From: Eutreptiella sp. 'Long Island Sound 2002'
Lineage: Eukaryota > Protista > Euglenida
NCBI GenBank assembly: GCA_964036045.1
Contig: OZ038378.1
Span: forward strand, 184,264,001 to 184,328,000
DNA: 64,000 bases
Direction of reading: 5' to 3'
Below the pieces are notes generated by a model. It did not search any database and had not been told where the DNA came from. It saw only the letters and a program-made list of their open reading frames with translations. The position numbers and the translations under genes are program-made. Below are positions 16,294 through 64,000 of this stretch, piece after piece (position 1 is the first letter of the stretch; every line of letters begins with the position of its first letter).

Positions 16294-16372
16294 ATGGCTC
16301 TTGTTGAAACGGGCGTCACTCGCGTCGCACGAAACAAGGGCGGTTTCTCGAAGCAGCTGTGCAGAGACGTGG
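16294..16372 (+). CDS. Exon 1 ([27 protein letters not shown]), candidate start
   Basis: ATG 16294; phase-1 donor G|GTGCGT matches the phase-1 acceptor of exon 2. An upstream CCGCAG at 16244-16249 could be a trans- or cis-splice acceptor. Confidence 0.55.
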
Positions 16373-19300
16373 GTGCGTTTTCCTTTTCCTTGGTGGGACA
16401 TGCGCCGCGACGTTCTTGTGCCCCTCTCAGACAATGTGGGAGAGACGCACGCACGACTGTCTTCTTGATTCCGGGCCCTGCATGGCAGTGAAAAGAGGGG
16501 TCCGACTGAGCACTCCAAGTCCACTCCAAACGAGGGTGCGTGTCGGGTTCCGTCGGGTGACACAGGCCTGAAACGCACACCAGAACGATTCTTGGCTCTC
16601 AGTGTGTGCACACTCCACTTCAACGTTGCAGACTCCGAGGACATTCCCGAGGAAAACTGGTTCAATCGCTCCGTGTCCGACCCGAACCATGCCACGTTCG
16701 AGGAAGTCACAACTCTGGGGCTGTGCCTGAACGTCAGTGTGGACCTGATATTCTCTCCGCACAATGGCGGCGCGGAGTACGACAACGGCATCGATGCCGC
16801 GTACACGGACCAGTGCGACTACTGGGTCAAGGACCCCGAGCGCATTGCCCTCCAACTCAACTTGCCAGTGTCCAAACTAAAGGCTGCGGCCAAGATCAGC
16901 CCCCGCAGCACCATCACTCTTAGATGGCCTCAGTACGCGGCCTTCGGCATCCCACTCAATGCCTTCTCCTTCGCCTGGGCCAACCCCATCATGAGCGAGG
17001 ATGCCACGCTGCTGTCGGCTGAGGACGATTTGTTCTGCTTCTTAAATTACGGGGGCTACGTCTACTTCGACAAAGGTGGGTACGTCATCAAGGTCACAGC
17101 CCTCTTCAACCCGCTCCAACGGGCGCCCACCCTCCACAACCCGGAGCAGCCCTTTACGCTGCGGTAGAAGGCACTGCCGCAGCGCATAGCAAAGGCGCGC
17201 TGCGATGTTGGGCCGACTTTGTTCCAGATTCAGATTTGGGGATGTGCTGTTGTTTGCGAGCTCCCTGGGCTACCGCATCCCTGTGAGTGAACCCTTTGCC
17301 GCTGTTGGCCGGTCTAGAGATGTGATGGTGATTCGGTGGTGTTTGCTTTGTGGCTTTGCTGACCTTTCTTTCTTCGACGGGATGGCACGCACAGTGCCCG
17401 CTCCGTACGCGCTCTGTGCAACGGTTTTCTATGTATTGGCATCGAAAGGGGATGTTTAGATAACACAGCAGGGGAAAACCTCGAGCTCCGTGGCGGAAAA
17501 GAACAGATCCTCTGACCCATGGTAACCCTCTCAGAAAGCCAAGTGCAGTCTGCTGTGGACGTCACTTGGGAATGCACGGGCGTGCACAGACGTCCAACCC
17601 GACATCCGTACCATCTTGCACACCACCACAACAAGGCACACCTGTGTTCAGGGTTGCAAAAGGGATGTACCGGGTGAAGAGGGCGGTGCAGGGGTGTCGA
17701 GTGTTGAAGAGGCTTGGTCACGGTTGGAAGGGGTTATGGTGGGAAGGGTCTGGAGGGTTGGCACAGGGTGTCGGTCGAGCAGCGGTCCGAGGGCAGGGGT
17801 TATACCAAGAGTGCCTCACGATCTGTCACTGACCGGTCAACAATGTCACAATGGCGTTCCCAGCAGCCTTTTGGACAACCCTCTACGGTCCTCTCCATCG
17901 TAATACCTCCCATCCTCTCCAGCCATCTCCGAGGCTCAGCTGTCACAGCACATGACGCCTGACCAGGAGGTACCCCGTTGGGGTCTCTCCAACGGGATTC
18001 CGGACGGGGGCATAAGTGATAAGCGGCCCCAGGCACAAGGGTGTCCTTGGTGACCCCGCGAGCCGGAAGGGACTAATAGTGGTTCTCGCCGGTGCCTGGG
18101 CGTCACATGGGTATTCAACCTCCACCACTACCCTCTCCAGCCCCAAGCAGATGATGGAGACGTTCGAGGGACCATGCCCCACGAGCAGCGTGCTTCGTGA
18201 GAGGTCCTCGGCCTGTGGATCCCATGTGTTGCCATATTGGGCGTCACCGTAGGGTGTTGCCTCAGCCGGCAACGAGCCGTGCTGGGCGCGTGAGCTGCGG
18301 CCTGGGCTGCCTGCCGGCAGCCTGGTCCAGTTTAACGGAAACCGTCACAGGTTCCGGAGCTGTAGACACGGGCCGCTGATCGCCATTATCCAGCTTTCTC
18401 CAGCCCAGCGCCTCTCGCTCCAGTTCACCAACCACTGCCGCCATTTACCCAACCCTCCTCAGCCTCTGAAATTTCACGCGCCTGCAATCCCCCCGTCCCC
18501 TCCACTGCCTCCCAGGTCAATGGGGTCCGCCTCGGGAACCAGACCAGCCCCTTGCGCTTCATCGGCCCGTATCCGTTGGGACGCAATCGCGACGCGTACG
18601 AGCGGTTGGTTTGCCGCAGCCGCCTGACGCGGGTGACGCTGTCGGGCCTGAAGGACCACGCCGTCCGCTTCGGGTGGGTGCTGCCCATGGAATTCGACGA
18701 CTGCAGCTCCGGCGCGTTCGTTTACGAGTACAAGGATCCCAGCGAAACGCGGTACATGCGAATGGACCTGGAGCCCGCAGGAAACAACGCAATGGACCGC
18801 GCAGCCAGTGATCTGGGGGTGCAGTTGGAGTTCGTGAACCAGCAGCTGCACGTCGTGAGCCTGTCGGACAGCAGCACGCTGAACGCCTGCGGGATCGAGC
18901 GAGGCGATGTGATCCTGCAGTGGGACGGGAACATCATCACCAGCAAGGAGATGTTCGACGCCATCTACGATACCGCGAAGCCCGGCTACGCCGTGACGCT
19001 GCGCGTGCGGCACCCCAGCGACCGGACCCGTGTCATCTGTGGGTTCTTCCGGATGCCGCGTCCCAGCGGCACAGAGGAGTCCGAGAGCCTCCAGGTGTTT
19101 GTGTGGGGATGGACGTGCGTACGCGCGTCTCATTGTGCTGTTGGGCGGTGTCGCATGGCACCTCTAACGTATCCTGCCATCCTGCCATACAATCCATACC
19201 TGTTGTGCATAGCTACCCATCTGCAGGGCGACGGGGTGCGACTTGCACAGTCCGTGTGTGCTTGCTACACCGACGTGTTGTGCTTGGAGTGGGGCGATAT

Positions 19301-22300
19301 GGGGTTTCCATAATGCCGAAATAGCCCTGCCGTGAACTGAGATTCTGCGGGTTCTACCCATCCCACACAACAGACCGGGCGGCCCTGCCCACCGAGCACA
19401 GCGCCAAGCCAGGCAACATGCCTGAAAATGCAGCCTGCCACTGTTGTGTAACACTTGGTGGTCCCGAACCCCCTGGCCCTGTGTGAAATTTCCCACATGG
19501 TTTGTGGTGGCGCGCGCCCTCCAAACCTCACTGCTCTGGGGAAGATGCATCTCCTGTCGTCCAAGCACCGTCAGTGGAGCTTTGGCCGCTGTCGGTTACC
19601 CTGCAACCACCGCCCGACCGCCGTCGGTGACCGCCCGAATGTGACTGGAATTTGTCCCAAATTTTGCAGTGGCATTTAAGAACTGGTGCCAAATTTTCTC
19701 TGCACCAAATTTCGCACATTCCTAATTTCCCCCACAAACAGCACGTGTGTCGTCTCAGGGGAGTTTCAACAGACCTCTCTTCAGCTTCCTCCGGACCGCC
19801 ACCGGAGGGGGCGAAGATGACTTCGGCCAGGCGCGGTCCCCAGGCTTCTTGCGGTCCCCAACCAGCTTCAACCTGCCAGTCAGCGCCCCGTCCCCTGCGT
19901 CCCTCCGCATGACCGTCGCCGGGTCCGGCAACGACCTCCCGCTGTGGTTCGCCCCCATGGACCCGGGGTGGTTCGAGTTGACCTTCCCCAAGTACACCCT
20001 CCAGTGCTCCGCCGTCACGACCCCCCTCGCCGGCATGCTCTCGGCCTGGTCCCGCCTCAATTTGGGGTCTGTCGTCAAGGATTTCCTGATGCCGGAGTCG
20101 AACTGCATGGTGTTTGCCTACCCCCCGCCCCCCCCGCCCGAGGGGCTGCCTGAGTTGCCCCTGGAGCTCGCGAGCTTCATGGCCAACGGAGCATTTCTAT
20201 ACTTCAATGAGGACAAACAGCACTCAGTGTGCCAGGTGCGTGCCTCCGCCCCTGCTCTGTGTGCTGGGTTTGCTCCAGCCGGCCTGTCATCCCCCGCTCC
20301 CTGTTCCACCTGCACAACACGCACGCAGGCAGCCGCACAGGAGAGACGGCCCCGCCGCGGACCAGCGAGACACAGGACACTGCAAGACACACCGGCGGCC
20401 GAGCAACGGCCGGGACTCCGAATGCGGGGCGCAGCAAACGGGCGGTGTCGTTCAAGGGCACCCAGCGAGCGCCCAGGCGCAGGCGGAAAATGGCCAGGGC
20501 TGCAACAGCAGCGGGGCATGGGCAAGTGGGGACGGATGTCACCCGAGCTCCTACCACCAGAGGGCCTTGCCAAAGGCGAGGGGACAGGCGCAGGGACCCG
20601 GCACCGCCCTGGGATATGCACAGAGCGCCCAATCTGCACGTCTGACCCTGGTGACCCGTGCTGGTGTCCCTCCTTAATATGGCATAATTGCTTAATTGCT
20701 TAAGAGTGTCCTGAACTTTGATAGTCTTGTATCCTCCTTCATATGGTTTCCTCCTGTAGGACAGCACCCACCCATCCACCCACAAGCACACACAAACACA
20801 GACACACAGCCGCGCACGCGCGCGCGCGCACACACACACACATATGTACATTGTCAGTCGCACAACGCCTCCAAGCATTCAAAGTTCTGCCGTTTGCAGA
20901 TTGCCCCATGTGTGGAGAAGTGGAAGACCACTTCCATGTCTTCAAGAAGTGTTTCTCCTCACAGGATTCCCTGGCTTTTATCAGGCAGTTATGGGAGTGT
21001 GGGTAGAAGACAACAAGTGGTACGAACCCTCTGGGACGTGTACCCATTTTCCTTTCCTTTCAGTCACAACGGTACAGGGCTGGCTAGTGTGGTCGGCGGT
21101 TTATGCCTTGGGTACTACATGGCAAAGGGAACAGTATCAGTTCTTTACAATTTTTATTGCTGCTTGTTGCGCCCTCTTTCCCCCCAGTTTTTAAATTTTG
21201 TTGTATGCGATTTCCCCGTCCCTTTTCAAAGAATGTGTTTTCTATTAAGGTTTTTATGGCTGTGAGCAGCATGTTGTTCCTGACACACAGGCCCAGCATA
21301 TTCTCAGTTTCTTCCAGATTCATTGGTTTCGACTCTCGGAACGAGAGAGTAAGAGGGCTACCAGGCCTATGTGTATGCGTTGCCAACAGCAGCAGCAGCA
21401 GCAACAGCAACAGCAACTGCAACTGCAACAGCACCGATACCAAGACCAAGACCATGACCATGACCAAGACCAAGACCAAGACCAACACCAAGACCAACAC
21501 CAACACCACCAATAACACCAACACCGACACCAACACCAACATCAACACCAACACCAACATCAACACCAACACCAACACCAACACCAACACCAACACCAAC
21601 ACCAACACCAACACCAACACCAACACCAACACCAACACCAACACCGACACCAACACCACCAATAACATCAACACCAACACCACCAACAACAGCAACACCA
21701 CCACCACCACCACCAGCATCAACGCCACCACCAACAGCATGAGCAACAGCATTAGCAACACCAATACAACACTAACAGGAACACCAAAAACAATGACACC
21801 ACCACCACCACCACCACCACCACCACCACCACCACCACCACCACCACCACCACCACAACCACCACAACCACCACAACCACCACCACCACCACAACCACCA
21901 ACACAACCAACTGCAGGCGCTGGTGGTCCTGGACCCACGCGACCCGTTGTCCGACGAGCGCGCGATCCTGCGCACGAAGCTCTGCTTCGAGGAAGGGGAG
22001 GCCACGCGCCGCCGCCCCGGTTGGCTCGAGGAGGCGGCGAACGCCGTCGTGCTGCAAGACGAGCTGGTGGAGGTCCCCCGTGCGAGCCACTGGCAGCACA
22101 CGCTGCCGGACGGGACGTGCTTCACGAGGCTGGCGTGGACGCCTGCGCTCGCGTTGGGCAACGAGAGCGAGTTCACCAACGGCGGGTATATCTTTCTGGA
22201 CGACGGGGGCAACAGCGTCAGTTTCGGGTGGTTGCAGGGGTCAAAGAACCTCTTTGAGGCGAAGATCGACTGCATGACGGGGGAGCGCCACCGGGCGCAG

Positions 22301-25300
22301 CGGGAGGCCACGGAGGTACAGTCCCATTCACCAGCCTTGGCAACGATTGGCAACCCTTGACATCGTTGTTGAGGGGATGGGGATGAGAATCGGGGGCGGG
22401 TGCAGGTGGAGGGGGAGGGCATGAGGACGGAGAAGAGATGGGGGTGGGCCGCCCTGCCTGCCACTGGGGTGGCAAAAAATGGCGCTTTTAGGCCAGCCCC
22501 CTCCATGTCCCTCCCCAACCCCACCTCTCTCCTCATTCCCTTCGCATTCCCCTCAAGATCCCCTCCCAAGCGGACGCTGGCGAGAATCAGGAGTTCCCCC
22601 CGCCCAAGGGCCGTCGAGGGCCTTTGGAGTGCATTTCATATGGCATGGCCGGCCGGCACGCAGTGTTGTCGGGGAGGCCATCATGCACACCCCAGGCGGC
22701 CTGTGAGTCTGTCTGAAGATCGGCCTCCAACTCCAAACCTTAATCGCACGCCCCTCCTACCTCACCCCTTTCGTCTCCCTCTCCCCGTCCCCTCCCCATT
22801 GCCAATTCCCTTCCCAGTACAGGAGCAGGGAGGGCCCCTGCCATCAAGTACAGGAGCAGGCAGGGCCACCGCCCAAGCAATCAAGCGGCATTGTCCCTCC
22901 AACAAAGCAGAGGGACAGGGTCACAGGATCTTGGCTCGTGGTCCCTGCTCACTTTTTTGAATTGTATTGTTAAACCAATTTTTTGACTGCAGGTGACCCA
23001 TGTAGCCCTACCCTGGCATATGCACCATGCGGCACTGCCAACAGCGTGTTGAAAGGGTTTGCATTGTGCAAGGGGCTTGCCACCATTCCTTTTCATCCTC
23101 ATTCGCTAACAAGAGGGTTCTGTAGAAGGGTCGTAGCCCGGAGCCCTCCAGAGTGGCCAGATGTGGAAAACTTTTGCTCTTGCAGTCATTTCAATAGCAA
23201 AAAGCGGTCACTGAGGGTGATAAACAGTACAACAAGATGCTAAAGAGTGAGAAGAAGCATGAGAAGAAGTAAGTAGGCTGTAATTTTCATCATCATCCAC
23301 ATCATTCATCACGCGCTCTCCCACAACCAAAACAGTCCAAAAACAAAACAGCCCTCTGTAACCCTCCCCAGGGTACCTAGTACGTTCTAACTAACATATT
23401 GGATTTAGAATGTATTTGATCTCATACATCTTGGGTCTTATATGTCTTAGCTCTTCCGTATTCGTACGGAATTGTGCAAATATGTATTTGATCTAATACG
23501 CATGAGCTAATATTGCTGGGGCTCTAGTAACATAGGTGAACGAATATGTACGCATTGTCTGCAAACTATACACAGTGTCTACAAGCTGCACACAGTGTCT
23601 GCATAATGCACACAGCATGTACAGAGGGTACATGGGTAGATGGGGACACGGGTGCTGTGGTAACACGTATTATCTAATACATAGTGGACAACCTATCATC
23701 GCAGCTCTGTTCCCTTTTCAACCCTTCATAGCCTTCTTTGACAACCCTCGCCGGCCCCTCCCACCATCTTCCACCAGGTGCTGCAGGGTCTGAAGCCATT
23801 CGACCGCTTTTACCGGGTTGGAATCAAGCATAAGAAACAGTGGAGCCTCGCGTTCGAGGTGCCCGCAGTGCTGCGACCCGCCGCCATGATGCTGGCAATG
23901 CTGGGTCGGAAGGGGGCAGAGCAAGAGGTCGTGAGCGGTAAGTCGCACTACGAGTGCGCGCCGTCGGAGGGGCAGCCCCTCGGCATCCCCAACGTCCGCA
24001 TTGACGGCGAGTTCCAGGGGATCGAGCTGAACGTCAAGAACATGGTTGCCATTTGGCGGCGGCGCGGGGAAGAGGCGGTGCTGCAGGAGGCGTTGGCGTC
24101 CGTGGGATGGATGTTTCAGCCCGTGGAGGACCAGCCCATGATCAACCTGCACACGTGGTACGGCGCCTACGCCCCCCACCAGCCCGAGGTCACCGCAAGG
24201 ATCCAGGAGCTGCTGCGGGGCCTGTCCAACGACGGGTTTCGGCTGCTGCGGCAATGGCTATTCGCAGCGCACGTGCGCAGCGAGGACGTGGAGACGCCGC
24301 TGATTGGCATCCGGAACAACGCAGTGGTGGAGGATGAGGCGGCGTGGATCGACGCACACCTGAGGAAGGCGGATCTGAAGCCCACCAGCACCGACCGGTG
24401 AGCAAGATGCTTGTTTTGTCCTGTTTGCATTGGATGCTGTGTTCATTGCTGGGGGGTTGTAGGGGGCGGTGGAGGGCTGTGGAGGGCGGTGGAGGGCTGT
24501 GGAGGGCTGTGGAGGGCTGTGGAGGGCTGTGGAGGGCCGTGGAGGGCTGTGGAGGGCGGTGGAGGGCTGTGGAGGGCTGTGGAGGGCTGTGGAGGGCTGT
24601 GGAGGGCTGTGGAGGGCTCTGGAGGGCTGTGGAGGGCCGTGGAGGTTGTATTTGTTTCGAGCGATCGGCCGTACGTTTTATGTGCACAGTGCCCTCAGTG
24701 GATATGACCGGTCCTCTGCGGAGTGCACAGGGCCCTCAAGTGGCAGACGGGGGGATGCACCCGAAAATGCAGAACAGAAAACTAGTCGGAACAATCGGAG
24801 TGGCTCGTGTGTGTTGCATGTTCGCCCAGAGACGGCCCCAACTCGCTCTGATGATGCGCAGGGCGCTTGCTGGTGTCCGCCGAAATTAGCCGGCGGACAC
24901 ATCGACGCGGCGCACACCCGGCCGGCCGGGTGGGCCGCGAGTCAACCGGCCGCTAAGCCGCCGGCTGTGGACTTGCACGTCATGAAAGTCGTACCCGGAA
25001 CATGACCCACAGACCACACGACTGGACGGTGGACTGGCACGTGTCGCGCCCCCTCCCTCGCGCCCCTCCATGCGCCTGCCGCCCCGCACCCGCGACCCCC
25101 CGTTCCGCATCCCAGGGCCCTCATCCGACGGATCAAGGACTTCAGCATCGCGGCGGTGTGCAGCACGTCCCCGATCAGCGGCCTGGAGGAGCTCTACGGG
25201 GCCGCGACCTGGACGCTGGGGTACGACGAGTGGACGAAGATCCACGAGAGCACGCGGATCTACACGAGTCGCCTGCTCCCGGGCCCCTTCTTCGTGGCGC

Positions 25301-40300: not shown

Positions 40301-40485
40301 AGAGAGATAACTTGGTAAACCAAAGTTGCAGCTGGCCCTGAGCACCAGTCACCTGCTGTCTGTTGCTTACCGCTTGCTGCTTCCCGCAGGTCAGACCTGC
40401 TGAGGGCTGGAATAACCCTTCCGGACATGGCTTACACATGTTTCTTAACCACCTTTCTTGCTCCGTTCTTGTTTCGTGGTTCTCC

Positions 40486-40532
<47 letters not shown>

Positions 40533-46500: not shown

Positions 46501-49500
46501 GCGGCTGCGAGGCGACCAGCCCAAAATACTGGATTGCGAGGGACAATAGACAAGCAGGTTGCACACCATCAGAGCCGAGCCCAGGGCACACAGATAAAGG
46601 GGGTCGACAGCTCACATTCCTCGCCTGCGACATATAATGTGGGCGCAGGGGAGCGGACGCCGCGGGCGTAGAATACCGCGACTGTGAGCAGTGGGACAGA
46701 CACCAGATTCAGTCCCACAACCCCCGCCCCCCCCCCCAAGTGCTTCCTTCCCAAGAATACTTTTTCCCACCGTCCGTTGACACGCAGTAGTCTGTACACA
46801 GGTTCCCCTTCAAAACCCAAAGTGGTGCGTGCACCCGGGAGTACCGCAGGAACCGGCACGCGTATCTCAGCCCTTGTGGCAACCAAACGTACTCCCTCCA
46901 CACGTACACCCCAGCCGCCCCTCTCCTGGGCGGCGGTTTGACAGTCTCCGGGAGCGGTCCAAAAAAGGGGGGGGGGACTGTGGGCGTCCTGAAGGACCGC
47001 CCTGCTGCTGTATTTCGGATGGGGTGGGGGTGGGCCAGGGCTTCTTTAGAATCATTAAAAACCAAGGGGGGGGGGCCTCCCCCAAAACCCCCTCCCCCCC
47101 TCCCCAGACCAAAGTGACCATAGTGGGAAAAAACGAAATTTACAATAGGGAAAATCTGGTCAGGCCATTTTTGGTACACCAAGTTTTGGGTCCCAAACCC
47201 CCTCCCCCTCTCCCCCCCCCTGCTCAAAAGAAGCCCTGGGGTGGGCTGCTCGGCCCACTGCCCATGACAGGACTGACCTGGACCAACAGCAGCAGGTCAC
47301 ACAAAATGTGGCTCTGGACCCGGGGTGTACCACACGGCACGCGACCAGCCTCTGTGTGCCTTGGAATCAAGTGGCGGTTGAAGTCAAGCATTTGAGAGGC
47401 CCGGGGGGGACGGGGACACGGGGTGTGTGCAGGCTGTGGCTCCGGGTGCATCGCGTTTTAGAGAGGGGGGCTACTGGAGGGGGGTTAGTCATAAATGGGG
47501 GCGGGGGGTCTATCAGTCCGGAGTGCCATAGGGCGCCTTGAAGGCGTGGTGGGCTTCATGTATGCCGGTAAACTGCAACAACAGTCCTTGGCCTTAGGGG
47601 TGGGCGGTGAGTGGTAAACAGAAGTCTTCCTCCCCTTCGGTGCACTTACTGTGTGCAGGTGATTTGTTGACGTCCTATTGGATTTATGTTGAGGGGAACC
47701 TGCACCACATTCTGGACACTTCGACTTCGCTCCGCAAGTGTAGGTGGGGGGGGCGCCAGGGAACGCTCCCACAGGCTCATCCCCCCCTCCCCCGACCACA
47801 AAGGCTTTGTGCCAACGCCCCCCCCCCGACCCCACTTGTACGCCACGCAGAAGTGGGGTCAAGTCACGTTGAACGTAGTCGCGTGGGGTCGCGTCAAGTA
47901 GAATTAGGTTTCGGGCCTGGCCTAATCGCTTGTTTCCGCGCCGTCGTCTCTGCAGTCCGCCCCGCCTCCTTCCCTTTGCACGTCCGTTCAGATGGAGGCG
48001 GGGAAGGTGCTGAACGGGGACTACATCTTGTCCCGCAGCGAGGAGTACCCGGTCATGGCAGCCCGCATGCTCATGGTCAAGCACTTGCCCGTCCGTGGCA
48101 TCCTGACCACCAACTACGACCAGTTGCTGTGCCTGTGTACCGAGGTCCGTCACTGCCTCGGCCTACTGCCTGTCCACGCCCCCCTCCGACACCGATGGGG
48201 CCACCCCCCGCTTCTCTTGCTCAACCGCCAGCGGTCACCGCCCCTGCCAACGCAGGCAGCAACGGACGGCTTCCGCTGCTTTGCGGCGCCCCTGCCTGAC
48301 CTGCACTGTGCACAAGCCATGTCGAGGGGCGCCGCGGAGCGATGTGTCTTGGCCCTCACTTCTTCCTTCAACAGTTGAGCCATCAGCTGTGCATTACACA
48401 CCTTCGTCACCTCAAATCACGGGTGGATGTGATATTGACGCAGTTATTTTGGTCGCCGCGCGGGGGTGGGGGGGGGGCAGAAGGGGCTCTTGAGGGCGTG
48501 ATGACAAATGACGAGTTACGAAGTTCTCACAACGGTCGTGAGAAAAGGGCCGTCTGAGAACTGGTGATGGCTCATGAAGTGGGCCGCCAAGCGGCCCCGA
48601 GGGCAATTTTCCGGGAAGGAAAAACACTTCGCAGCACAAAAAGATCATCGCATCATGGGGTCTATGTTGGGGTGTCAGAGACCCCGGCTCCAGCCCCTTT
48701 GGGGCCCCTGTGGACGACAAGAGGCACAGCAGCGCAAAGCGGTCACAGGGTGATGGGCTCCAAACACGTCACCAGGCCACACAGCACAATGAATTAGTCA
48801 TGAGGCTGGCCGCCTTTCTGCTGCAGGACAGTGTAGAGAGTGAAGCACAGGAGCCTCTCATTTATCGCAAAGATCACTCGCTCCCACCCGCTGATCGTAC
48901 CCACCCATCTGCAGCCATGGGGAGGGGAAGAATGTGTACGTGTACCCGCAGCACAGATTTACGTGTTGTGATTGATTGTTTGGAAGGGTGTGGAGGGTGG
49001 ACCCAAGCGTAACCGCTTGCTCGCACACACGCGCGCGTCCACACACACACGAGCGTGCGTGAGTGCGATCCCAAAGTGGTGCAGGATTTCTCCAGAAATC
49101 GGGCACTGCCGAAAACCTCCGAAGAGATGGTATGCCTGCCGCAAGCTGCCTCCCAACATGCAAAGTGGACGGTCGTTGTTGCTCGTCGTCGATAGTCGGG
49201 GTCAATGTTTGTCATCGTTGTTGTTGGTTCACCGTTTGTCGTTGGTCGCGGCTGGCCGATCGCGGATGGGCGTTGTTGGTGGTCGTTGTTGTGGGTCGCT
49301 GCAGGCGCCTCGTCCGCTCGCCCACTCCCCACCGCTCGACGCCCCGCCTTCCAGGACGAACGCAAGCAGTTCATGTGCTGCGTGTGCCGGGGCTTCACGC
49401 CGCAGACGACCGGGAACAAGCCGCAGTACCTGACGCTGATCCGGAACCACGGCCGCGAGCGGGAGCACGAGCCGTTCAGTGCGCAGCGGCACGAGGAGCG

Positions 49501-52500
49501 CCCCATCATCCAGATTCACGGGAGCACCTCGGACCCCCCGTCCATCGTCTTCACACGGGAGGGGTACCGCTCGCTCCTCCACCTCAACCCCGCCTACTCC
49601 AATTTCATTAAGACCGTCATGGCCCGGTCGACGCTGCTGTACCTGGGCTTCAGCTTCACCGACGGCTATTTCAACGAAATCCGCTCGGAGCTGATGACGC
49701 TCCGCGAGCGCGCGGTGGAGGGCGGCGGCCAGCCCTTCAGCTACGCCGTCATCTGCGACAAGCCTCAGGTCTGTTGGGGTGCCCCTTCGGAGGAGGTGGC
49801 CGGCGGTGCGTGACGGATGTTGCATGTGCGGCGGCTGCCGCGTGAGGCCACAATTTCTGCCGGACACGAATGACAAGTCCGCTGCGTCCCGCCATGCGTT
49901 TTTGCTGTTGTCGAAGGCCGCCCGTAACGACTGCCCCGGTGCCCCTGGGGTTCTGCCCGGCCTTCGGTCGCATCCCGACTGCCTTCGGAGGCTGTCCCAT
50001 CAACCCGCTTTGCTCATGGGCGGACCATGCGCCGATCTTGAGGCGCAGAGTTGGTACGGGGGGTTCCTGACGAACGAGATGTGTGTGTTTTTCTCAAGGG
50101 AGCATCCCGCTAAGGACAGCCCTCGGGCCTCGGGGCCGGCGGTTCACCGCCAACCGCTGGCGGTTGGTGGTCAGCAGCACAGTCGCATTAATGAATGGCA
50201 TGCATTCCCTTATAAAATGTCCGTCACAGCGTGCCACCGGTAGCCATCACAATGACCGCAGACGCAGAATTGGAGAATAGGATACGAAAGGACGTTTTTG
50301 CAGCCTCTAGCCTAGGGCCCGTAATTGTTGTTCATCGAGTGAACGCCCACATGTATCCTTTTTATTGTTTGGTAACACAAGTCCAAAGGCTCACAGTGTC
50401 CGTCCAACTCAGGAAACCATCCCGTACCAATCGGTCCCCCACGTCCCAGTTCATGAGTCTTCTCTTTGCGCTCGACAGACTGTAGACGGATGTGCCACTC
50501 GATGATTGGAGACCGTGTGGGGTGCCTGACTGCCTTCTCCCGGGCGGTGTTTGCGCGTTTGTGGGGTTTGTGGGGTCACGCGTAAGTCAACGTCATTGTC
50601 TTTGTTTTTGCGGGAAGGACCCCCCTGAATTTGAGGCCGCAGGCGCCGGAATGTGTTTCCACTTACAATTCCGCTCGAACGCTTTTCGCTGCCGCCCCAG
50701 ACAAAGGGCCAATGCTGCGTAACACTGTCCAACCGCTGGGCGCCATGTAGCGGACGCCGGGTGCTTTCCTTTCGTTGTTGTCGCTGTTTAAGACCGCCCC
50801 GCCTGCCCCGGGCGCTGCGCCCGTTCGCTTGACTGCGTGTGGCAGGCGGTGCGCAGCTTCTACAACAATCACGAGGGGGTCCACTTGTTCTCCTGGAAGC
50901 CGAAGGATCACGGTTTTGGGGTCATGGACCGATACCTGGACGGCATCTTCCGCGGCACGCACCTCGCGGCCGCCCTTTCGCACTGCACAGTGATGCTCTT
51001 CAACCCCAAATCGCACACGGCGTTCTTCGCGGACGGGCAGCGGCTGGAGGTATTCGTGTGGGCCCTGGGGTTGTGTCCCGCGGGCCCCATATTTTTGTGC
51101 ACCCTCTCTGCGCCCCCGTCGTATCCCCTGTGCTCTCCGTGAGCCCCTTTTGGTTGATTTTGTGCCTCTCAGAACTCTCCCAAAGAACTGCGCTCGTCGA
51201 ACAGCCGTAGAACGGACGGTACCAGACAGCGGTTGGCGGGTAATAGACGGTACCTTGTGGCTAATCGGTGAGTCCCCTGCTGACCGATGGCGGATTTTCC
51301 CGCAGGGGTACAGTGGAGGCATGGAATGAGGCCTGGCGCTCGGTGTCCCCGCGTACATGTGCTGTGTGCCCTCTTGTGTTCTGTGTTGCCCCTTGTTTTG
51401 TGGTGCTCGGCCTCTGTGCCCCTTGTGTGCCCCTATGCGCCCTGCGTGCCCGCTGCGTGTGCCCCTGTGCCTCTGTGTGTCCCCTTGTGTGCCCAGTTGT
51501 TTTGGGGTGCCCAACCGCCCCCTGCCTGACCTTCATGCGCCCCGTGCGTGCCCAGGTGTTGACGAAGGTCGACATGCTGATCGAGTGCCTGCCGTGGTTC
51601 TTGTCGCCGGAGCGCTTCTCCAAAAGGGTCATCAAGGGCACCATCAAGGACGAGTTCTCCACCGAACACCTGGTCCTTGTGAAGCTGAAGTGCCGCCTGC
51701 TGGATGACACTGGCAAGCCCCTGAGCACTGTCTTCTCCGACGTCCTGGGCAAAGAAGTCATGGAGGGCAAGCCCTTCTTCATTCCGCAGGAGTACATTCG
51801 ACCCGTGGATGGGGGCTCAAAGATTGACGGGGTTCTGTGTTGCCATCACCAACATGTGCCCTGTGGCAGTACGTGGGCGGGGCGCAGGGGTAGTGAGGGA
51901 ACCAGACCTCTGCACCTCTGTTGGGGGTTTGGGGGGAGCTGACATGGTGCCATTCGCCAGCACTGTCTGCACCCCATTGAATGCCACAGGAACACTACAA
52001 ATGAGGAAAGACCACTTCAGCACTTCTGCAACTTCCATGGGAAATTAATCATCATTAACCAAATCCTCTGGCACGTGGCACAAGTGAGCAAAGGCACAGC
52101 CTAACGTATACCCGTGCAAATCCTGAAAAATACCGAACAAATTATCTACAAAAATTTCGCACAGAATTTGTACCGCGGGAATTCTACCCTGCATACCCCC
52201 CCCCCCCCCTATTGCCAAGCAATTTCCTGCCAGGAACAATAGAGAATGGAGGGCTACAACAACAAAAACGGTGGGTCGTGCCCCGAACCGGGCGGCTCAA
52301 CGGGCTGCAACCAGGTTGCTAGCGACGGCGACGAGGATAAAGTCCTCCAGGAAACAACAGCAACCGTCCACTGTTTCTCATGAGCAACTTTTGCCACCCC
52401 GGCATGATTTGTCTGCTCATTTTTAAGAAATGGCACGGGTTTTGTCGCGCCAGAATTTGTAGACCCAGATTGGCCTAGACACGGAATGCCCCCCCCCCCC

Positions 52501-54877
52501 CCCCGCGGTAACAATGTGCCCTCTCCCAGCCCCAGTCCCTGGTTTGGTGGTTGGGTGGCCGGGTGCATGGGTGGATGGGTGGATTGTTGAGGTAGTCGGG
52601 CCGTTCAGATCGGGCCAAATCAGACGCCTGCTGCGGTATGACCGCCAACCCACGTCCGCAGACCCCCTGGGACGCCTGGACGTACCCCCACCCCCCTCCC
52701 ATACCAGCGAGAGGGCACTACATCTCCCGCACGGTTCGACAGGGCACGGAGGTGTGTCTGGACCCCGCACAGCTCCAGAACCTGCACGAGGACTACGAGC
52801 TGGGCATCGACGTGGACCTCCTGCACTACCTCATCCCCTTCGGCCTCTGCGTGCTGGACACGCGCTGCTACGCCGTCGTGCTGGACGACGCCCCCGGGCC
52901 GCCCGTCCTGCTGCCGGGGCGGCTGCTGCGGCTGGAGCGCAAGGGCAAGCAGCCCGTGTCGCTGAAGGAGGTGGCCAAGCGCGTGACGGAGCGCATCACC
53001 CGCGACTGCGGCAGCAGCATGTCGCTGATCATGCGGAAGAAGGGGCGCGCGATGGCGAAGGAAGAGCTGGTGCTGCGGCTGTTGGAGCAGATGCAGGCGC
53101 AGATGACGGACGAGATGGACCACACGATGGAGACCATTACGGAGGTCCCTCCTTTCTCCGAGTGCCCCCATCTCTTTGGCGGGGATTTGTGACGGGGCTG
53201 ACCGGAGGGCTCCACAGGGCCCTCCACATTTGCATGCCATATTGCTGGCTGTACAACCACCACAACCATGAAAACCCCATTCAGCCATTGCCGTGTCTAC
53301 ATCTACGTCCCCTCCTCCCATCCCATGCCAAACCCCTCCCCCCTCATGAGAAACCCCCCCCTTTAACAAGATTGTTGGGATGGGACCCCCCATGCCAAAG
53401 TAAAATGGCGGATGCCCCCAACGTCATGCCCCAATGGGCCTTGCAGACAGGGGGTATCACCCATGACCAGAAAATCACTCAACCGGACCGCCTGTCACCG
53501 GTGCATAGCACGCCATAGGTAGTGGGTCCTTGTCTCAAATTGCAAAACAGATGTACCGAGAAGAATTGTGATCCTGCAATACCCAGAATTGCCACTGTCT
53601 CCATGACCCTCAGTGTCCGTGACACACATCAATATTCACAGGGGCCCCGAGATCAGCTGCGGTATGATTGCAGGAGAGAGCTCGTGGCCATAGACTACAG
53701 ACACATTTTTTTCTCCAAAGGTGACAGGGACATGTGAGAGCGCAGGAAAGAACGTGGTGAGCACTTCGGTGTGTGGTGGGTTAGACATGGCGTGCTGCAC
53801 GCATGCGTTGCTACATCGACAAATGTCGCCAGCCGATGGCCCAAGCCTGCCCCAGGGCCTCTCAGGGGCGTTTTTCACTCTGAATTTCTTGAAATCTTCG
53901 TCCTCATTGTCCGGGGCGACCATCGTTGCATGATTTATAACAAAAGCGCAGCTTGCTTTTCACCCACAAAGCCCCTACATTGGCCTTTGTGCATGATGGC
54001 CTGTGTGTGTGGCAACATCTTTGTCCAAACAACACTGGGTGTTGTTCTCATGCATTTCTTGGCTCCAACCGTTGTGTCCCCTCCCCTCGCCACACCACAC
54101 CTTGCCTCACCTCACCTCCACGTCCACCTCACTCCACCTCACCTCGCCTCACCCCACCTCACCTCACCTCACCTCACCTCACCTCACCTCACCTCACCTC
54201 ACCTCACCTCACCTCACCTCACCTCACCTCCAGCTCCACCTCACCTCACCTCACCTCCACCTCACCTCACCTCACCTCACCTCACCTCACCTCACCTCAC
54301 CTCACCTCACCTCACCTCACCTCACCTCACCTCACCTCACCTCACCTCACCTCACCTCACCCGACCTCCAGCTCCACCTCACCTCACCTCACCTCACCTC
54401 ACCTCACCTCACCTCACCTCACCTCACCTCACCTCACCTCACCTCACCTCACCTCACCTCACCTCACCTCACCTCACCTCACCTCAGGGCTGGTGACCTG
54501 GCACCAGTCTAAAAACCCTCAGGATGGTAGCTGTAGGACGGATTGCCTACACGCACTGCCACGCTCGACACCAATCGTGAATCGTCGTGATAGTCGTGCC
54601 ACCACGTGACTCAGCTCTGCCATCGTGGCCCCCTCTCCGCTCAACTCCACCCGTATGGTGCACTCTCTCTCTCCCTCTTCATCCCGTGTCTCCAAGGGCT
54701 GAGTGCCGCACCTCAAGTGCGTCCCTCCCCCTTGCAAGCCGTTTCCTGCTCACAGTGGGCACGTCGTTATACGTTCGGCTCTGGCAAGACGTCGACCTCG
54801 CCGTGGCAATCTTCCAGGCCGCTACGCGGGGAGCCGCGACGGGGACTGCATTCGACGTATCCGCCGCTCAAGCGTGA
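16294..54877 (+). CDS. Giant multi-exon gene (25 exons, ~8010 nt CDS, ~2669 aa): repeat domain x4 + PDZ + PARG/macro-like + ankyrin + C2-like + SIR2_2 NADase-like protein
   Basis: GC3-rich blocks bounded by AG/GT join in one continuous reading frame from ATG 16294 to TGA 54875-54877, with intron phases matching at all 24 junctions. Motifs continue across junctions (e.g. HEFSSRNG|[14 protein letters not shown]|CGYNERY, HSVCQ|ALVV). Confidence 0.8.
16566..17163 (+). CDS. Exon 2: aromatic repeat copy 1 (FAWANP...GGYVYFD...VTAL)
   Basis: ACACAG| acceptor, open GC3-rich frame (ORF 16592..17167), phase-2 donor CG|GTAG. Confidence 0.85.
17228..17282 (+). CDS. Exon 3 (55-nt micro-exon, [18 protein letters not shown])
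   Basis: TTCCAG| acceptor and consensus |GTGAGT donor; converts phase 2 to phase 0 exactly as needed between exons 2 and 4. Confidence 0.75.
18516..19094 (+). CDS. Exon 4: repeat copy 2 + PDZ domain
   Basis: CCCAG|GTC...CAG|GTG. LGVQLEF...[18 protein letters not shown]...[11 protein letters not shown] (~18813-19014) matches the HtrA-type PDZ pattern. Confidence 0.9.
19759..20235 (+). CDS. Exon 5: repeat copy 3
   Basis: TCTCAG|GGG...CAG|GTGCGT; contains VFAYP...[10 protein letters not shown]. Confidence 0.88.
21384..21910. repeat. Compound microsatellite (AGC)n-(ACCAAG)n-(ACCAAC)n-(ACC)n, intronic
   Basis: Direct reading; ends about 6 nt before the exon 6 acceptor junction. Confidence 0.97.
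21917..22315 (+). CDS. Exon 6: repeat copy 4
   Basis: CTGCAG|GCG...GAG|GTACAG; contains LAWTP...[11 protein letters not shown]. Confidence 0.88.
23778..24397 (+). CDS. Exon 7 (unassigned region)
   Basis: CACCAG|GTG, ORF 23778..24401, phase-2 donor CG|GTGAGC. Confidence 0.9.
24461..24645. repeat. (GGAGGGCTGT)n 10-bp tandem repeat
   Basis: About 18 units, direct reading. Confidence 0.97.
25116..25638 (+). CDS. Exon 8 (helical region leading into the macro-like domain)
   Basis: CCCAG|G phase-2 acceptor; donor CTG|GTGTGC chosen for phase 0 (alternative at 25677). Confidence 0.8.
26548..26868 (+). CDS. Exon 9: macro/PARG-like motifs [10 protein letters not shown] and LLPMGLG
   Basis: CGTAG|GTG...CAG|GTGTGT (alternative phase-0 donor at 26799). 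Confidence 0.85.
27136..27379. repeat. (CACCA)n pentanucleotide repeat
   Basis: Direct reading. Confidence 0.98.
28372..28635 (+). CDS. Exon 10: macro/PARG-like ([10 protein letters not shown]...ITIPAD...GLIGSWWE)
   Basis: GCACAG|GTG...GAG|GTTCAA, 88 codons, GC3-rich. Confidence 0.87.
30529..30828 (+). CDS. Exon 11 ([18 protein letters not shown]...)
   Basis: TCTCAG|TGC...CAG|GTGTGG, 100 codons. Confidence 0.87.
31915..32280 (+). CDS. Exon 12 (unassigned alpha/beta region)
   Basis: ATGCAG|GTC...CAG|GTGCTG, 122 codons, GC3-rich. Confidence 0.88.
32586..32740. mobile_element. ~155-bp hairpin/MITE-like element with ~50-bp imperfect inverted arms
   Basis: GGTGGTACAAGCTCCT..GGTTGGGGTGCCAAC..GCTGAAGTAACT (32590-32638) is the reverse complement, apart from a few mismatches, of 32687-32735. 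Confidence 0.75.
34720..35064 (+). CDS. Exon 13: two ankyrin-like repeats
   Basis: GGCCAG|GTG...AAG|[32 protein letters not shown] is a canonical ANK pattern; the second copy ends [10 protein letters not shown]. Confidence 0.9.
35345..35620. repeat. Degenerate ~30-bp tandem repeat (CATCCAAAAGCCTCCAAG-like)
   Basis: Recurring CATCCA...AGCCTC units. Confidence 0.6.
37191..37490 (+). CDS. Exon 14 (Trp-rich, unassigned)
   Basis: TCACAG|GCG...CGG|GTGTGT, 100 codons. Confidence 0.87.
37611..37785. repeat. (GGGAT)n pentanucleotide repeat
   Basis: Direct reading. Confidence 0.97.
39592..39705 (+). CDS. Exon 15
   Basis: GATCAG|GAC...ACG|GTACTA, 38 codons ([23 protein letters not shown]...). Confidence 0.75.
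40104..40129. repeat. (TG)n microsatellite
   Basis: Direct reading. Confidence 0.95.
40489..40530. repeat. (TG)n microsatellite
   Basis: Direct reading. Confidence 0.97.
42506..42843 (+). CDS. Exon 16: first part of a C2-like domain
   Basis: CGTCAG|GGC...GG|GTGTGC (phase 2); [11 protein letters not shown]...[25 protein letters not shown]. Confidence 0.85.
44284..44581 (+). CDS. Exon 17: end of C2-like domain and helix preceding SIR2
   Basis: CCCCAG|G phase-2 acceptor, GGG|GTGTGA donor. Confidence 0.85.
45539..45922 (+). CDS. Exon 18: SIR2_2 N-terminal motif [21 protein letters not shown]
   Basis: CATCAG|GTG...AAG|GTGGCC, 128 codons; GxGxS...LPxW motif. Confidence 0.92.
46118..46385. repeat. 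AT-rich foldback-like block: TTTTCCAACAAA-type units in the left half, inverted TTTGTTGGAAAA-type units in the right half
   Basis: The left-end sequence aligns with the reverse complement of the right end. Confidence 0.6.
47992..48144 (+). CDS. Exon 19: SIR2_2 motif ILTTNYD
   Basis: GTTCAG|ATG...GAG|GTCCGT; TTNYD at 48106-48120. Confidence 0.9.
49355..49768 (+). CDS. Exon 20: SIR2_2 core (IHGS...IVFTREGY...[10 protein letters not shown])
   Basis: TTCCAG|GAC...CAG|GTCTGT; IHGS 49514-49525, LGFSFTD 49643-49663. Confidence 0.93.
50846..51049 (+). CDS. Exon 21: end of the SIR2_2 domain
   Basis: TGGCAG|GCG...GAG|GTATTC; [13 protein letters not shown]...MDRYL fits the terminal strand-helix of SIR2_2. 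Confidence 0.87.
51556..51831 (+). CDS. Exon 22 (unassigned)
   Basis: GCCCAG|GTG; donor GGG|GTTCTG is approximate. Confidence 0.8.
52743..53144 (+). CDS. Exon 23 (unassigned, helical end)
   Basis: CGACAG|GGC (the acceptor may lie slightly upstream)...GAG|GTCCCT; GC3-rich. Confidence 0.83.
53642..53720 (+). CDS. Exon 24 ([26 protein letters not shown]), tentative
   Basis: TCACAG|GGG...AAAG|GTGACA; phase 0 to 1, linking exon 23 to the tentative last exon. Confidence 0.5.
54105..54486. repeat. (CTCAC)n pentanucleotide repeat
   Basis: Direct reading. Confidence 0.98.
54756..54877 (+). CDS. Exon 25, tentative terminal exon ([25 protein letters not shown]...QA*)
   Basis: TTTCCTGCTCACAG| acceptor, phase 1, stop TGA 54875-54877. 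Confidence 0.5.
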
Positions 54878-55232
54878 CGCCTTGTGCAGGGGTATCATCA
54901 GTCGTCCGATTCGTCGTCCCAACGTGGGGCCCCTCGCTCCCGTGCGCCACTAGGGTTGCAGCACCACGCGCCAGCGCGGTGCTCCCCTCGCACCCCCGCC
55001 CTGTGTGTCCTGGGACCCCCGCTCACCGACCCGGTCCGCCAGGCGGCCCCATGTTACTCCGCGCCATCGCGCCATGCTCTTTGTTTTGTCACACTATGGC
55101 CACGCTCGTGGTACCCCTTGTTTCTCTCCTGCGCGCCCCATCCGACTGGGGCTGCCTATGATGTCAGTGCACCTCCGTTTGCCGACACCTCGATCTGCTC
55201 CCCCCCCCCAACATATTGCGGCCACAGGCCAC

Positions 55233-55252
55233 CCGCTCTTTTCTCGCCACAG
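55233..55252 (+). promoter_or_regulatory. Pyrimidine tract + CAG splice-acceptor-like site 5 nt upstream of the LINE ORF1 ATG
   Basis: CCGCTCTTTTCTCGCCACAG|CTACCATG read directly from the sequence. Confidence 0.5.
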
Positions 55253-55257
55253 CTACC

Positions 55258-58251: not shown

Positions 58252-58259
58252 CCCGGGAC

Positions 58260-63554: not shown

Positions 63555-64000
63555 CCCGTCCTCGACCTCACGCGCCCGGACCGCTCCGGTGCTGCGCGCA
63601 GTCGTGCCGGACCGCGCTCCTTGTCTGGCGGCGTTCTAAGTCGGAGGTGATGCCCCGGGAGACCCACATCTTCCGTGCACGTTGATCTTGGAACGCTTAC
63701 TCGGGTGGATCCAGGACAGTTCGGAGCGGTTGGTGGCCGGGACCGGAGAGCAGATCGAGCCGTAGCGTTGTCGTACACTGACGTTGTGACCCAGACGGCC
63801 TGCTGGGAGGAGCGTTCTCAGGTGTGCGACGAGATTCGTCTTGCTCTAGCGGAGGTAAGACGGAGGACTCCCTCGGCAGAGCCTGCGTGGGGCCCCCGAG
63901 GGACGACGCCAAGGCTCACCGTACGTGGGACCGCGGCAGGCGCTCCTCCTCCTCCTCCTCCTCCTCCTCAGGGGGTGTTGCTTCACTGCCCTCCACTTGC

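Follow-up and report, generated by a model that had tools for sequence, protein, structure and literature searches.

A candidate giant euglenid gene combining a macrodomain-like fold, a WWE-like domain and an antiphage-type SIR2 domain

Can a single gene of a free-living protist encode both a SIR2 domain of the type used in bacterial antiphage defence and domains for ADP-ribose, and where would such a gene begin and end? This question is raised by a 64,000-nucleotide stretch of the genome of the euglenid Eutreptiella sp. 'Long Island Sound 2002' (assembly GCA_964036045.1, contig OZ038378.1, positions 184,264,001 to 184,328,000, forward strand), which is called here the window and is numbered from its first letter. 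A sequence-only reading had placed in it, at 16294-54877, a gene with 25 exons splicing in one frame into a protein of about 2,670 amino acids (aa). The giant in-frame protein with GT-AG introns was confirmed by our analysis, but the count is now 23-24 exons and approximately 2,780 aa. We consider it somewhat better than an even chance that the locus is one intact, very large euglenid gene with the order R1-PDZ-R2-R3-macrodomain-ankyrin-WWE-like-SIR2_2-C-terminal part (R1 to R3 being repeat modules) and with the sensor mechanism proposed below.

The SIR2 domain, its relatives and the gene model

The SIR2 domain spans four exons, in which the Gly loop, Asn and His motifs are intact and conserved across the family:

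45445-45922, + strand: SIR2_2 part 1, with the NAD-binding Gly loop 'FLGSGFS' at 45545-45565; high-scoring segment pairs (HSPs) with homologues start at 45539, and the PADLOC ThsA/LmuA N-terminal matches fall here
47992-48144, + strand: SIR2_2 part 2, with the catalytic-Asn motif 'TTNYD' at 48106-48120 and CxC at 48130-48138 (homologue alignment)
49355-49768, + strand: SIR2_2 part 3, with CxxC at 49376-49387, the catalytic His in 'IQIHGS' at 49508-49525 and 'LGFSFTD' at 49643-49663 (Pfam SIR2_2)
50846-51049, + strand: SIR2_2 C-terminal part, with 'HEGV...GFGV.DRY' kept in all homologues (homologue alignment)

In the 49196-49810 frame Pfam SIR2_2 (PF13289) was matched at 58.8 bits (cut-off 24.5), and the orthologue P0002 reached 75.1 bits. 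The best PADLOC matches were LmuA (76 bits) and ThsA (69 bits) for the orthologue domain and LmuA (49 bits) for the window exon at 49.4-49.8 kb alone, while the PADLOC matches listed for the domain comprised LmuA, ThsA, PDC-S25, SIR2, Dsr1 and Dsr2. The best PDB sequence matches were KomC, ThsA and DSR2-type chains, and the His of the euglenid domain aligns to the HG of the solved SIR2-like defence proteins. Based on these PADLOC and PDB matches (LmuA, ThsA, KomC, DSR2), the domain is of the antiphage type, nearer by profile to defence NADases than to deacetylase sirtuins, as the sequence-only reading had proposed.

With the SIR2 exon as query, exhaustive searching by HMMER gave 567 proteins, the best of which was the window's own open reading frame (ORF) call. 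The homologues include giant proteins of Petalomonas cantuscygni (2,831 aa) and Rhabdomonas costata (1,858 and 2,322 aa), a 395-aa match to the SIR2 region in Notosolenus, and P0002 (1,121 aa) and P0151 (1,241 aa), both from JGI metatranscriptome contigs that are nearly all ORF. Their Pfam domains are ankyrin, WWE and SIR2_2. P0151, a metatranscriptome transcript of a relative, is colinear with eleven window exons (34879-53147) plus two exons beyond the window, and the Petalomonas and Rhabdomonas transcriptome proteins are colinear with the window from 23874 or 25147 to 51007; the exon ends coincide with the ends of the homologue HSPs. Other contigs of the same assembly (ENA ERZ25074135) carry at least seven more loci of the family, and in the seven analysed the SIR2 exons are 44-81% identical. 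Two of these are intron-poor: L005/L008 match model residues 1087-1575 in one HSP (E 9e-73), and in L009 the ankyrin exon is joined to the next exon and three SIR2 exons are joined to each other. The colinear homologues, together with these paralogues in which neighbouring exons are fused, show that everything from 23.8 kb through the SIR2 domain and beyond belongs to one transcript. The search for the same architecture in other protists, suggested along with the sequence-only reading, recovered the core order in Petalomonas and Rhabdomonas. The macrodomain-ankyrin-WWE-SIR2 core thus seems to be an old euglenid family, multiplied in this genome with varying architecture.

Several observations concern the forms that this family takes. 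The L008 paralogue (L008:13868-19805, ctg8981) is intron-poor and apparently 5'-truncated, with model residues 1040-2295 packed into some 6 kb. A PiggyBac-like DDE transposase ORF is situated upstream of it on the opposite strand, and the paralogue may be a retrocopy. In L007:6710-10339 (ctg10662), no more than about 0.5 kb separates the SIR2 TTNYD exon from the preceding C-terminal part of the macrodomain, which suggests a short macro-SIR2 form without ankyrin and WWE. On a 13.6-kb contig of JGI sample 3300010883, P0017 is an intronless 951-aa WWE-SIR2_2 protein encoded beside TMEM135-like and methyltransferase genes, and the WWE-SIR2 pair is therefore present in another, uncultured, compact-genome eukaryote. 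Between the Asn and His motifs lies a conserved CxC...CxxC cluster, shared by the window and the Petalomonas and Rhabdomonas giants; the short WWE-SIR2 proteins P0017 and P0009 lack it, and P0151 has lost part of it. The cluster could represent an inserted zinc knuckle.

The window contains 47-68% G+C and zero Ns. Between 16.5 and 53.2 kb, long stop-free frames with a coding G+C content at third codon positions (GC3, 0.72-0.91) are confined to the + strand, and the minus-strand frames that overlap them are their antisense shadows. A dynamic programme, with codon usage and splice sites trained on the clearest frames, gave one open frame with GT-AG introns, a strong C-rich tract and a CAG|G acceptor. 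Corrected by external evidence, the model comprises 23 exons (2,756 codons) and stays open up to a sole stop at its end; its last two exons lie outside the window. A short 5' exon is probably missing from it; with this exon added, the model has 23-24 exons and about 2,780 aa in a + strand locus of at least 50 kb.

The macrodomain, ankyrin and WWE-like regions

Four exons tile a domain of about 360 residues, in order and without overlap, that is common to all four euglenid giants (4/4) and is 22-34% identical between the window and the euglenid homologues:

25116-25677, + strand: macrodomain part 1 (colinear alignment to P0014:230-590 and paralogues)
26548-26826, + strand: macrodomain part 2, with 'VTHP...GLG' at 26749-26784, a putative diphosphate loop (family alignment)
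28324-28635, + strand: macrodomain part 3, with 'PADS...QG..GSWWE' at 28582-28635, a putative catalytic-loop remnant (family alignment)
30529-30790, + strand: macrodomain C-terminal helix ('STAVLAR' at 30577-30597) and linker (family alignment)

The AlphaFold (AF2) model of the Rhabdomonas copy of this domain had a predicted template modelling score (pTM) of 0.75. In the Foldseek search against PDB, its top match was Larg1/Lpg0081 with ADP-ribose (E 3e-7, probability 1.0), followed by Drosophila CG3568/CG2909 and MavL and then by bacterial-type PARG. The VIA-align Z values were 17.9 for Larg1, 14-15 for CG3568/CG2909, 12-13 for MavL, 8 for bacterial PARG and about 6 for classical macrodomains, and the AlphaFold Database (AFDB) clusters and the language-model atlas agree, with leads to PARG and MavL. 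The 'VTHP...GLG' motif is placed in the model between strand 210-213 and helix 224-244, at a predicted local distance difference test score (pLDDT) of 69-94. In a protein word-index search, the macrodomain piece alone gave no match and, with full-length context, Rhabdomonas paralogues only. Judging from the model, the domain has the macrodomain fold of the Larg1/MavL/DUF4804 class, which is not proof of membership in that class. The macrodomain-like fold of an ADP-ribose-handling class, predicted earlier to stand in cis with SIR2, is thus borne out by the homologue model (VIA Z 17.9 to Larg1) and by the four window exons that tile it.

Between the macrodomain and SIR2, the following exons were distinguished:

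31949-32289, + strand: linker exon without a Pfam match (coding score 54.9; contiguous with the neighbouring exons in L005/L008)
34720-35076, + strand: ankyrin exon, with the clearest repeat at 34852-34923 (P0151 residues 1-64 match 34879-35064)
37191-37490, + strand: middle exon (P0151 residues 89-164 match 37263-37481; joined to the ankyrin exon in L009)
39592-39705, + strand: short middle exon (P0151 residues 168-223 match from 39601 onward)
42506-42843, + strand: exon whose end, at about 42782-42843 ('ATVHW'), opens the WWE-like domain (P0151 residues 204-306 match 42509-42835)
44284-44583, + strand: WWE-like part 2, with '[10 protein letters not shown]' at 44324-44353 and 'VVRVP' at 44495-44509 (family hidden Markov model, HMM)

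The ankyrin motif named in the sequence-only reading remains below the Pfam thresholds in the window (19.8-20.9 bits against 22.7 in the 34621-35205 frame; for the exon, Ank_4 at 20.9 bits against 22.7 and Ank at 19.4 against 21.1), but it passes in homologues (Ank at 28.2 bits in P0021 and 22.5 bits in P0113). In the protein model, one or two such repeats belong to the linker that follows the macrodomain. The C2 or membrane-binding module was not recovered, as no Pfam C2 was matched in any exon or frame translation (E up to 0.1-1).

A WWE-like domain, on the other hand, had not been seen in the sequence-only reading. Pfam places WWE directly before SIR2 in P0014, P0021, P0017 and P0152 (precomputed for P0152), whereas it is not called in P0151. 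The HMM built from the family matches model residues 1767-1869 at 14.5 bits; the region keeps 'HW', 'ELE..Y..G' and 'vvRvP' and is split by the 42843|44284 intron, and an exon-wise scan, which is weak for a split domain, gave no Pfam WWE (PF02825) match. The window seems to carry a divergent WWE-like domain just before SIR2. It should be stressed that, since the family also carries WWE directly before SIR2, the ADP-ribose theme is stronger than the sequence-only reading had seen.

The N-terminal modules and the ends of the gene

On the 5' side of the macrodomain, the model continues with five exons:

16640-17092, + strand: exon with repeat module R1 (donor 17092 fixed by an RNA contig; acceptor uncertain, 16603 or 16640)
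18516-19096, + strand: PDZ exon, with PDZ_2 at about 18810-19028 (acceptor from a spliced RNA contig)
19785-20226, + strand: exon with repeat module R2 (ab initio boundaries only, from the dynamic programme and phase; codon bias coding-like)
21917-22315, + strand: exon with repeat module R3 (coding score 55.6)
23778-24397, + strand: pre-macrodomain exon, the 5'-most one with cross-species homology (residues 395-439 of the Petalomonas protein P0021 match 23874-24002)

The PDZ motif noted earlier proved well above threshold (PDZ_2 at 33.9 bits in the 18366-19310 frame, Pfam cut-off 27). A 324-nucleotide metatranscriptome contig of run X7 contains 17061-17090 plus AG and then continues directly at 18516, and therefore defines an in-frame GT-AG intron at 17093-18515; RNA contigs of run X12 exactly match 18658-18957, a part of the PDZ exon. 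Read mapping across 18480-24420 gave one spliced junction and no RNA cover at 19.9-24.4 kb (run X1 is DNA, not RNA). The modules R1 (exon at 16.6 kb), R2 (19.8 kb) and R3 (21.9 kb) are divergent versions of a single module (pairwise z 3.1-4.1), and the observed scores were reached by 0-3 of 300 shuffles, unlike in controls. This repetition ties the PDZ exon to its downstream neighbour exons.

Searches for the same modules elsewhere were negative. The R-module HMM had no match in the homologues, the protein word-index search with the R3 exon returned solely the window's own ORF call, and metagenome contigs scanned with the exon at 23.8 kb and with that of the PDZ domain showed pattern matches but zero relatives; the R1 feature search in the language-model atlas was uninformative (score 0.85). 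The upstream walk in the paralogues L005/L008 and L009/L011 met neither R/PDZ modules nor an N-terminal macrodomain half.

Whether transcripts point to several separate genes, the outcome that the sequence-only reading had named as refuting it, was answered in part: a single transcript is established from 23.8 kb onward, and the 17092|18516 junction by RNA, but the 22315|23778 junction is unbridged. The locus could then consist of two adjacent genes on the same strand, i.e., an upstream one for about 650 aa with R1-PDZ-R2-R3 (16.3-22.36 kb, in-frame stop at 22358) and a downstream one for macrodomain-ankyrin-WWE-SIR2, beginning by spliced-leader trans-splicing at 23778, which would leave the PDZ outside the SIR2 protein. 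Euglenid mRNAs are commonly trans-spliced at AG acceptors, the R and PDZ modules occur in no core homologue or paralogue, and the cross-species homology begins at 23874, near the first in-frame ATG at 23886. However, the codon statistics of the junction, trained on homology-proven exons only, speak for continuity. The 14 read-through codons after 22315, which the upstream gene would use as its tail, score -0.82 per codon (non-coding-like, GC3 0.50) against +0.36 within the exon, whereas the 36 codons from the 23778 acceptor to the first in-frame ATG are coding-like, with only 0.7% of the open intron windows used as a null scoring as high; exon 23778-24397 thus behaves as an internal exon. Moreover, the phases match (0/0), the gap of 1.46 kb is comparable with the other introns of the gene, and the N-terminal exons show the same codon bias as the core. 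From phase and codon bias, we judge a single gene across 22315|23778 fairly likely and the two-gene arrangement rather improbable. The PDZ would in the single-gene reading be a lineage-specific addition, whose link to the core we infer.

The same region contains repetitive DNA. A microsatellite-like low-complexity tract (poly-His/Asn, Pro-Thr or poly-Thr, depending on the frame) lies at 21378-21910, directly 5' of the R3 exon. The intronic stretches 19276-19872, 20470-20867, 22460-22658 and 23455-23653 have a run X1 DNA word depth of 220-2,700x, compared with 25-40x in the flanks, and are dispersed repeats of high copy number, on which RNA contigs from other loci terminate as well. Further intronic tandem repeats, at 27117-27527, 37556-37896 and 53997-54509, encode periodic pseudo-peptides (HHTTP, GMGWD, SPHLT) and are non-coding by GC3.

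For the 5' end, one candidate was found:

16294-16368, + strand: candidate first coding exon, with the ATG of the sequence-only reading (the GT donor after 16368 is phase-compatible with the acceptor 16640)

Its codon bias is mildly coding-like (3% of the open intron windows reach its score), and the ATG at 16294 is a plausible start. Two other exon candidates of this part were rejected: a mini-exon at 18141-18189, which conflicts with the RNA junction, and a low-complexity exon at 21396-21723, which became superfluous once the donor was placed at 20226.

At the 3' end, the exons and the intron that follow SIR2 are:

51556-51838, + strand: post-SIR2 exon without a Pfam match (P0151 residues 756-875 match 51451-51825)
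52714-53144, + strand: post-SIR2 exon, not terminal (the P0151 similarity ends exactly at the GAG|gt donor after 53144)
53145-64000, + strand: window part of the 10.9-kb intron 53145-64002, which holds a same-strand long interspersed nuclear element (LINE)
about 64003-64338 (L003:15744-16079), + strand: penultimate exon, beyond the window (P0151 match E 4e-24, in phase)
about 65794-66105 (L003:17535-17846), + strand: last exon, beyond the window (P0151 match E 3e-18, in phase), with the stop TAG at 66103-66105

P0151 extends 220 residues past the 53144 donor, and in the contig beyond the window (L003, corresponding to window positions 48260-73554) the C-terminal part of the orthologue, of about 200 aa, matches the two further exons. 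The gene end at 54877 given by the sequence-only reading had to be abandoned, as 53.2-54.9 kb has neither homology nor coding support and the true exons lie at about 64003-66105; an end at the 53190 stop was likewise rejected because homologous exons follow downstream. The AF2 model of the C-terminal domain had a pLDDT of 41 and the feature search of the post-SIR2 region in the language-model atlas was uninformative (score 0.56); the C-terminal part of about 500 aa comprises domains without an assigned fold.

The LINE in the large intron is full length (55216-63554), with ORF1 at 55216-58251 (1,011 aa) and ORF2 at 58260-63554 (1,764 aa; APE-type endonuclease and RVT_1), and 55285-55871 was rejected as an exon since it lies inside ORF1. 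The paralogues L001 and L006 have introns of about 2 kb where the window gene has 10.9 kb. A similar 2,084-aa element was found upstream of the SIR2 exon of paralogue L010.

A decaying or non-functional family member, in which the open frame is an artefact of fitted splice sites, was also considered. It would accord with the boundaries that are ab initio only (19785-20226, the 5' end and the repeat-rich stretch 21378-21910), with a full-length LINE in an intron, and with the truncated look of some paralogues (L005/L008 beside the DDE transposase). Such an artefact is nevertheless very improbable, as the 23 exons are stop-free with intact catalytic motifs, their ends equal homologue HSP ends, metatranscriptome contigs (including one with a spliced junction) match exactly, and the codon bias is strong throughout.

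Proposed function and comparison with known systems

The mechanism proposed for the product of the single gene is built by analogy with the ThsA, LmuA and DSR effectors and with the Macro-fused clade of eukaryotic SIRim proteins. The macrodomain and the WWE domain would be receptors for a ligand derived from ADP-ribose, with free or protein-linked ADP-ribose, iso-ADP-ribose, poly-ADP-ribose and Arg-ADP-ribosylated protein as candidates, while PDZ and ankyrin would anchor the whole protein to its partners. Once the ligand is bound, the SIR2 domain would become active and use up NAD+ in response to stress or a pathogen. A role as an NAD+/ADP-ribose immune or stress sensor is plausible.

The class on which the macrodomain is modelled consists of Arg-specific ADP-ribosylhydrolases, which bind ADP-ribose, hydrolyse Arg-ADP-ribose and carry the motifs [VIL]xGxGxGx[FWY] and WDxx[SA]xPGN[DE][FY][FWY] (PMC10951314). 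Several points speak against the single-gene sensor. The R modules and the PDZ are absent from every homologue and paralogue examined, and the 22315|23778 junction is bridged by no transcript or homologue, so that the PDZ may sit in a separate upstream gene; expression data cover a minority of the exons. In the WWE-like region of the window the second Trp is gone and the score does not exceed 14.5 bits. For the macrodomain, the fold comes from the model of a Rhabdomonas homologue, with 28-34% identity to the window exons, rather than from the window protein, and the domain has no sequence match in Pfam (E up to 10, including PF16062 and PF24754) or, by the family profile, in PDB chains. Finally, as mapped by eye, the motifs of the MavL class are kept only as the remnants 'P.GLG.[FL]' and '[SA]D.....QG..G[NSY].W'; the first Asp of the second motif is retained, whereas the position that aligns with its second acidic residue holds no such residue. 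These partial motifs make hydrolase activity doubtful, and the domain may serve for binding rather than hydrolysis.

The main functional rival is a writer-reader-eraser module. One gene would encode an ADP-ribosylation signalling enzyme with SIR2_2 as the writer, WWE as the reader and the MavL-like macrodomain as the eraser of Arg-ADP-ribose, directed to housekeeping targets via PDZ and ankyrin. Some macrodomain-paired sirtuin-family enzymes (SirTM) are ADP-ribosyltransferases. The writer, reader and eraser domains stand together in cis in the model, and MavL-class macrodomains are known as Arg-ADP-ribose hydrolases (PMC10951314). However, the SIR2 profiles group with NADase effectors (LmuA, ThsA, KomC, DSR2) and not with the SirTM class, the catalytic-loop motif of the macrodomain is degenerate, and multi-copy families that shuffle their architecture are more typical of conflict systems. 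We regard this enzyme as unlikely.

A more far-reaching form of the sensor proposal, which is equally doubtful, is a single-polypeptide abortive defence of the ThsA type. The degenerate macrodomain and WWE would sense an ADP-ribose alarm or toxin-made Arg-ADP-ribosylated host proteins and gate the SIR2 NADase, and the copy-number expansion with shuffling of N- and C-termini (PDZ here) would reflect an arms race.

Eukaryotic antiphage-type SIR2 proteins (FAM118/SIRanc and SIRim) are a current topic, and almost nothing is known of them outside animals and fungi. Here, one protein of a free-living protist would hold three modules centred on ADP-ribose (a Larg1/MavL-class macrodomain, WWE and a defence-type SIR2), in a family conserved from the deep-branching Petalomonas to Euglena-like algae. 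It is a candidate for ligand-gated NAD+ depletion in a eukaryote and, if this is true, an independent eukaryotic counterpart of Thoeris-like logic. Should the proposed function fail, the analysis still annotates a large, previously unnamed euglenid gene family.

The closest relatives are the uncharacterised EukProt entries P043467 of Petalomonas (2,831 aa) and RCo054904 (1,858 aa), RCo053411 (2,322 aa) and RCo041248 (1,535 aa) of Rhabdomonas. The euglenid homologues share with the window the core order of MavL-class macrodomain, ankyrin, WWE and SIR2_2, with 42-46% identity in the SIR2 exon, except that RCo041248 stops at its WWE and has no SIR2_2 match in Pfam. They differ in lacking the PDZ and R modules, in having other N- and C-termini, and in a WWE that passes Pfam, whereas that of the window is degenerate.

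A EukProt survey of 2024 (preprint 10.1101/2024.09.18.613514) distinguished five clades of eukaryotic antiphage-type SIR2 (SIRim), one of them typically fused to Macro, reported frequent fusions to Macro or NLR-type modules, and treated the eukaryotic SIR2 clades as independent acquisitions. Its SIRim clade C (SIRim+Macro) likewise joins a ThsA-like SIR2 with a macro-type domain in eukaryotes, and an immune role was suggested there from architecture alone. The window protein is far larger and has more modules, and a term search of the preprint gave no mention of Euglenida, WWE, PDZ or a MavL-class macrodomain. Vertebrate FAM118A/B (SIRanc) are also eukaryotic proteins of the SIR2_2 type related to antiphage SIR2 (PMC12700824; preprint), but, unlike the window protein, they are short and single-domain; no FAM118 chain was among the PDB sequence matches to SIR2 (E up to 0.01).

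As regards bacterial systems, ThsA and LmuA-SIR2 have the same GxG loop and catalytic Asn/His as the SIR2 of the window, whose protein is eukaryotic, has introns and the extra CxC...CxxC, and lacks Lamassu partners. Pfam detected no SLOG or TIR in the window exons and the PADLOC ThsA matches are confined to the SIR2 part, so that the ThsA architecture, in which SIR2 is joined to a SLOG/STALD (or Macro plus TM) sensor and works with a TIR protein, ThsB, is not reproduced, and the likeness to ThsA does not imply activation of the window protein by a cyclic ADP-ribose isomer. Larg1 (Lpg0081), MavL and Drosophila CG3568/CG2909 (DUF4804) share the fold of the euglenid domain over about 265 residues (VIA Z 12-18) and, like it, have a strand-GxG loop-helix arrangement in the diphosphate-loop position; the euglenid domain differs from them in its low identity (about 10%) and in being embedded in a giant multidomain protein. 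DUF4804 has been reported in bacteria, fungi and arthropods only (PMC10951314), and the euglenid domain would extend the MavL-class macrodomain fold beyond these groups.

The earlier statement that the architecture was unrecognised thus stands insofar as no characterised protein shares it, but the class of eukaryotic SIR2-Macro fusions was already published and euglenid homologues of 1,858-2,831 aa are present in EukProt. What is new here is the MavL-class macrodomain, so far as the model indicates, the WWE, the probable PDZ, the giant size and the expansion of the family.

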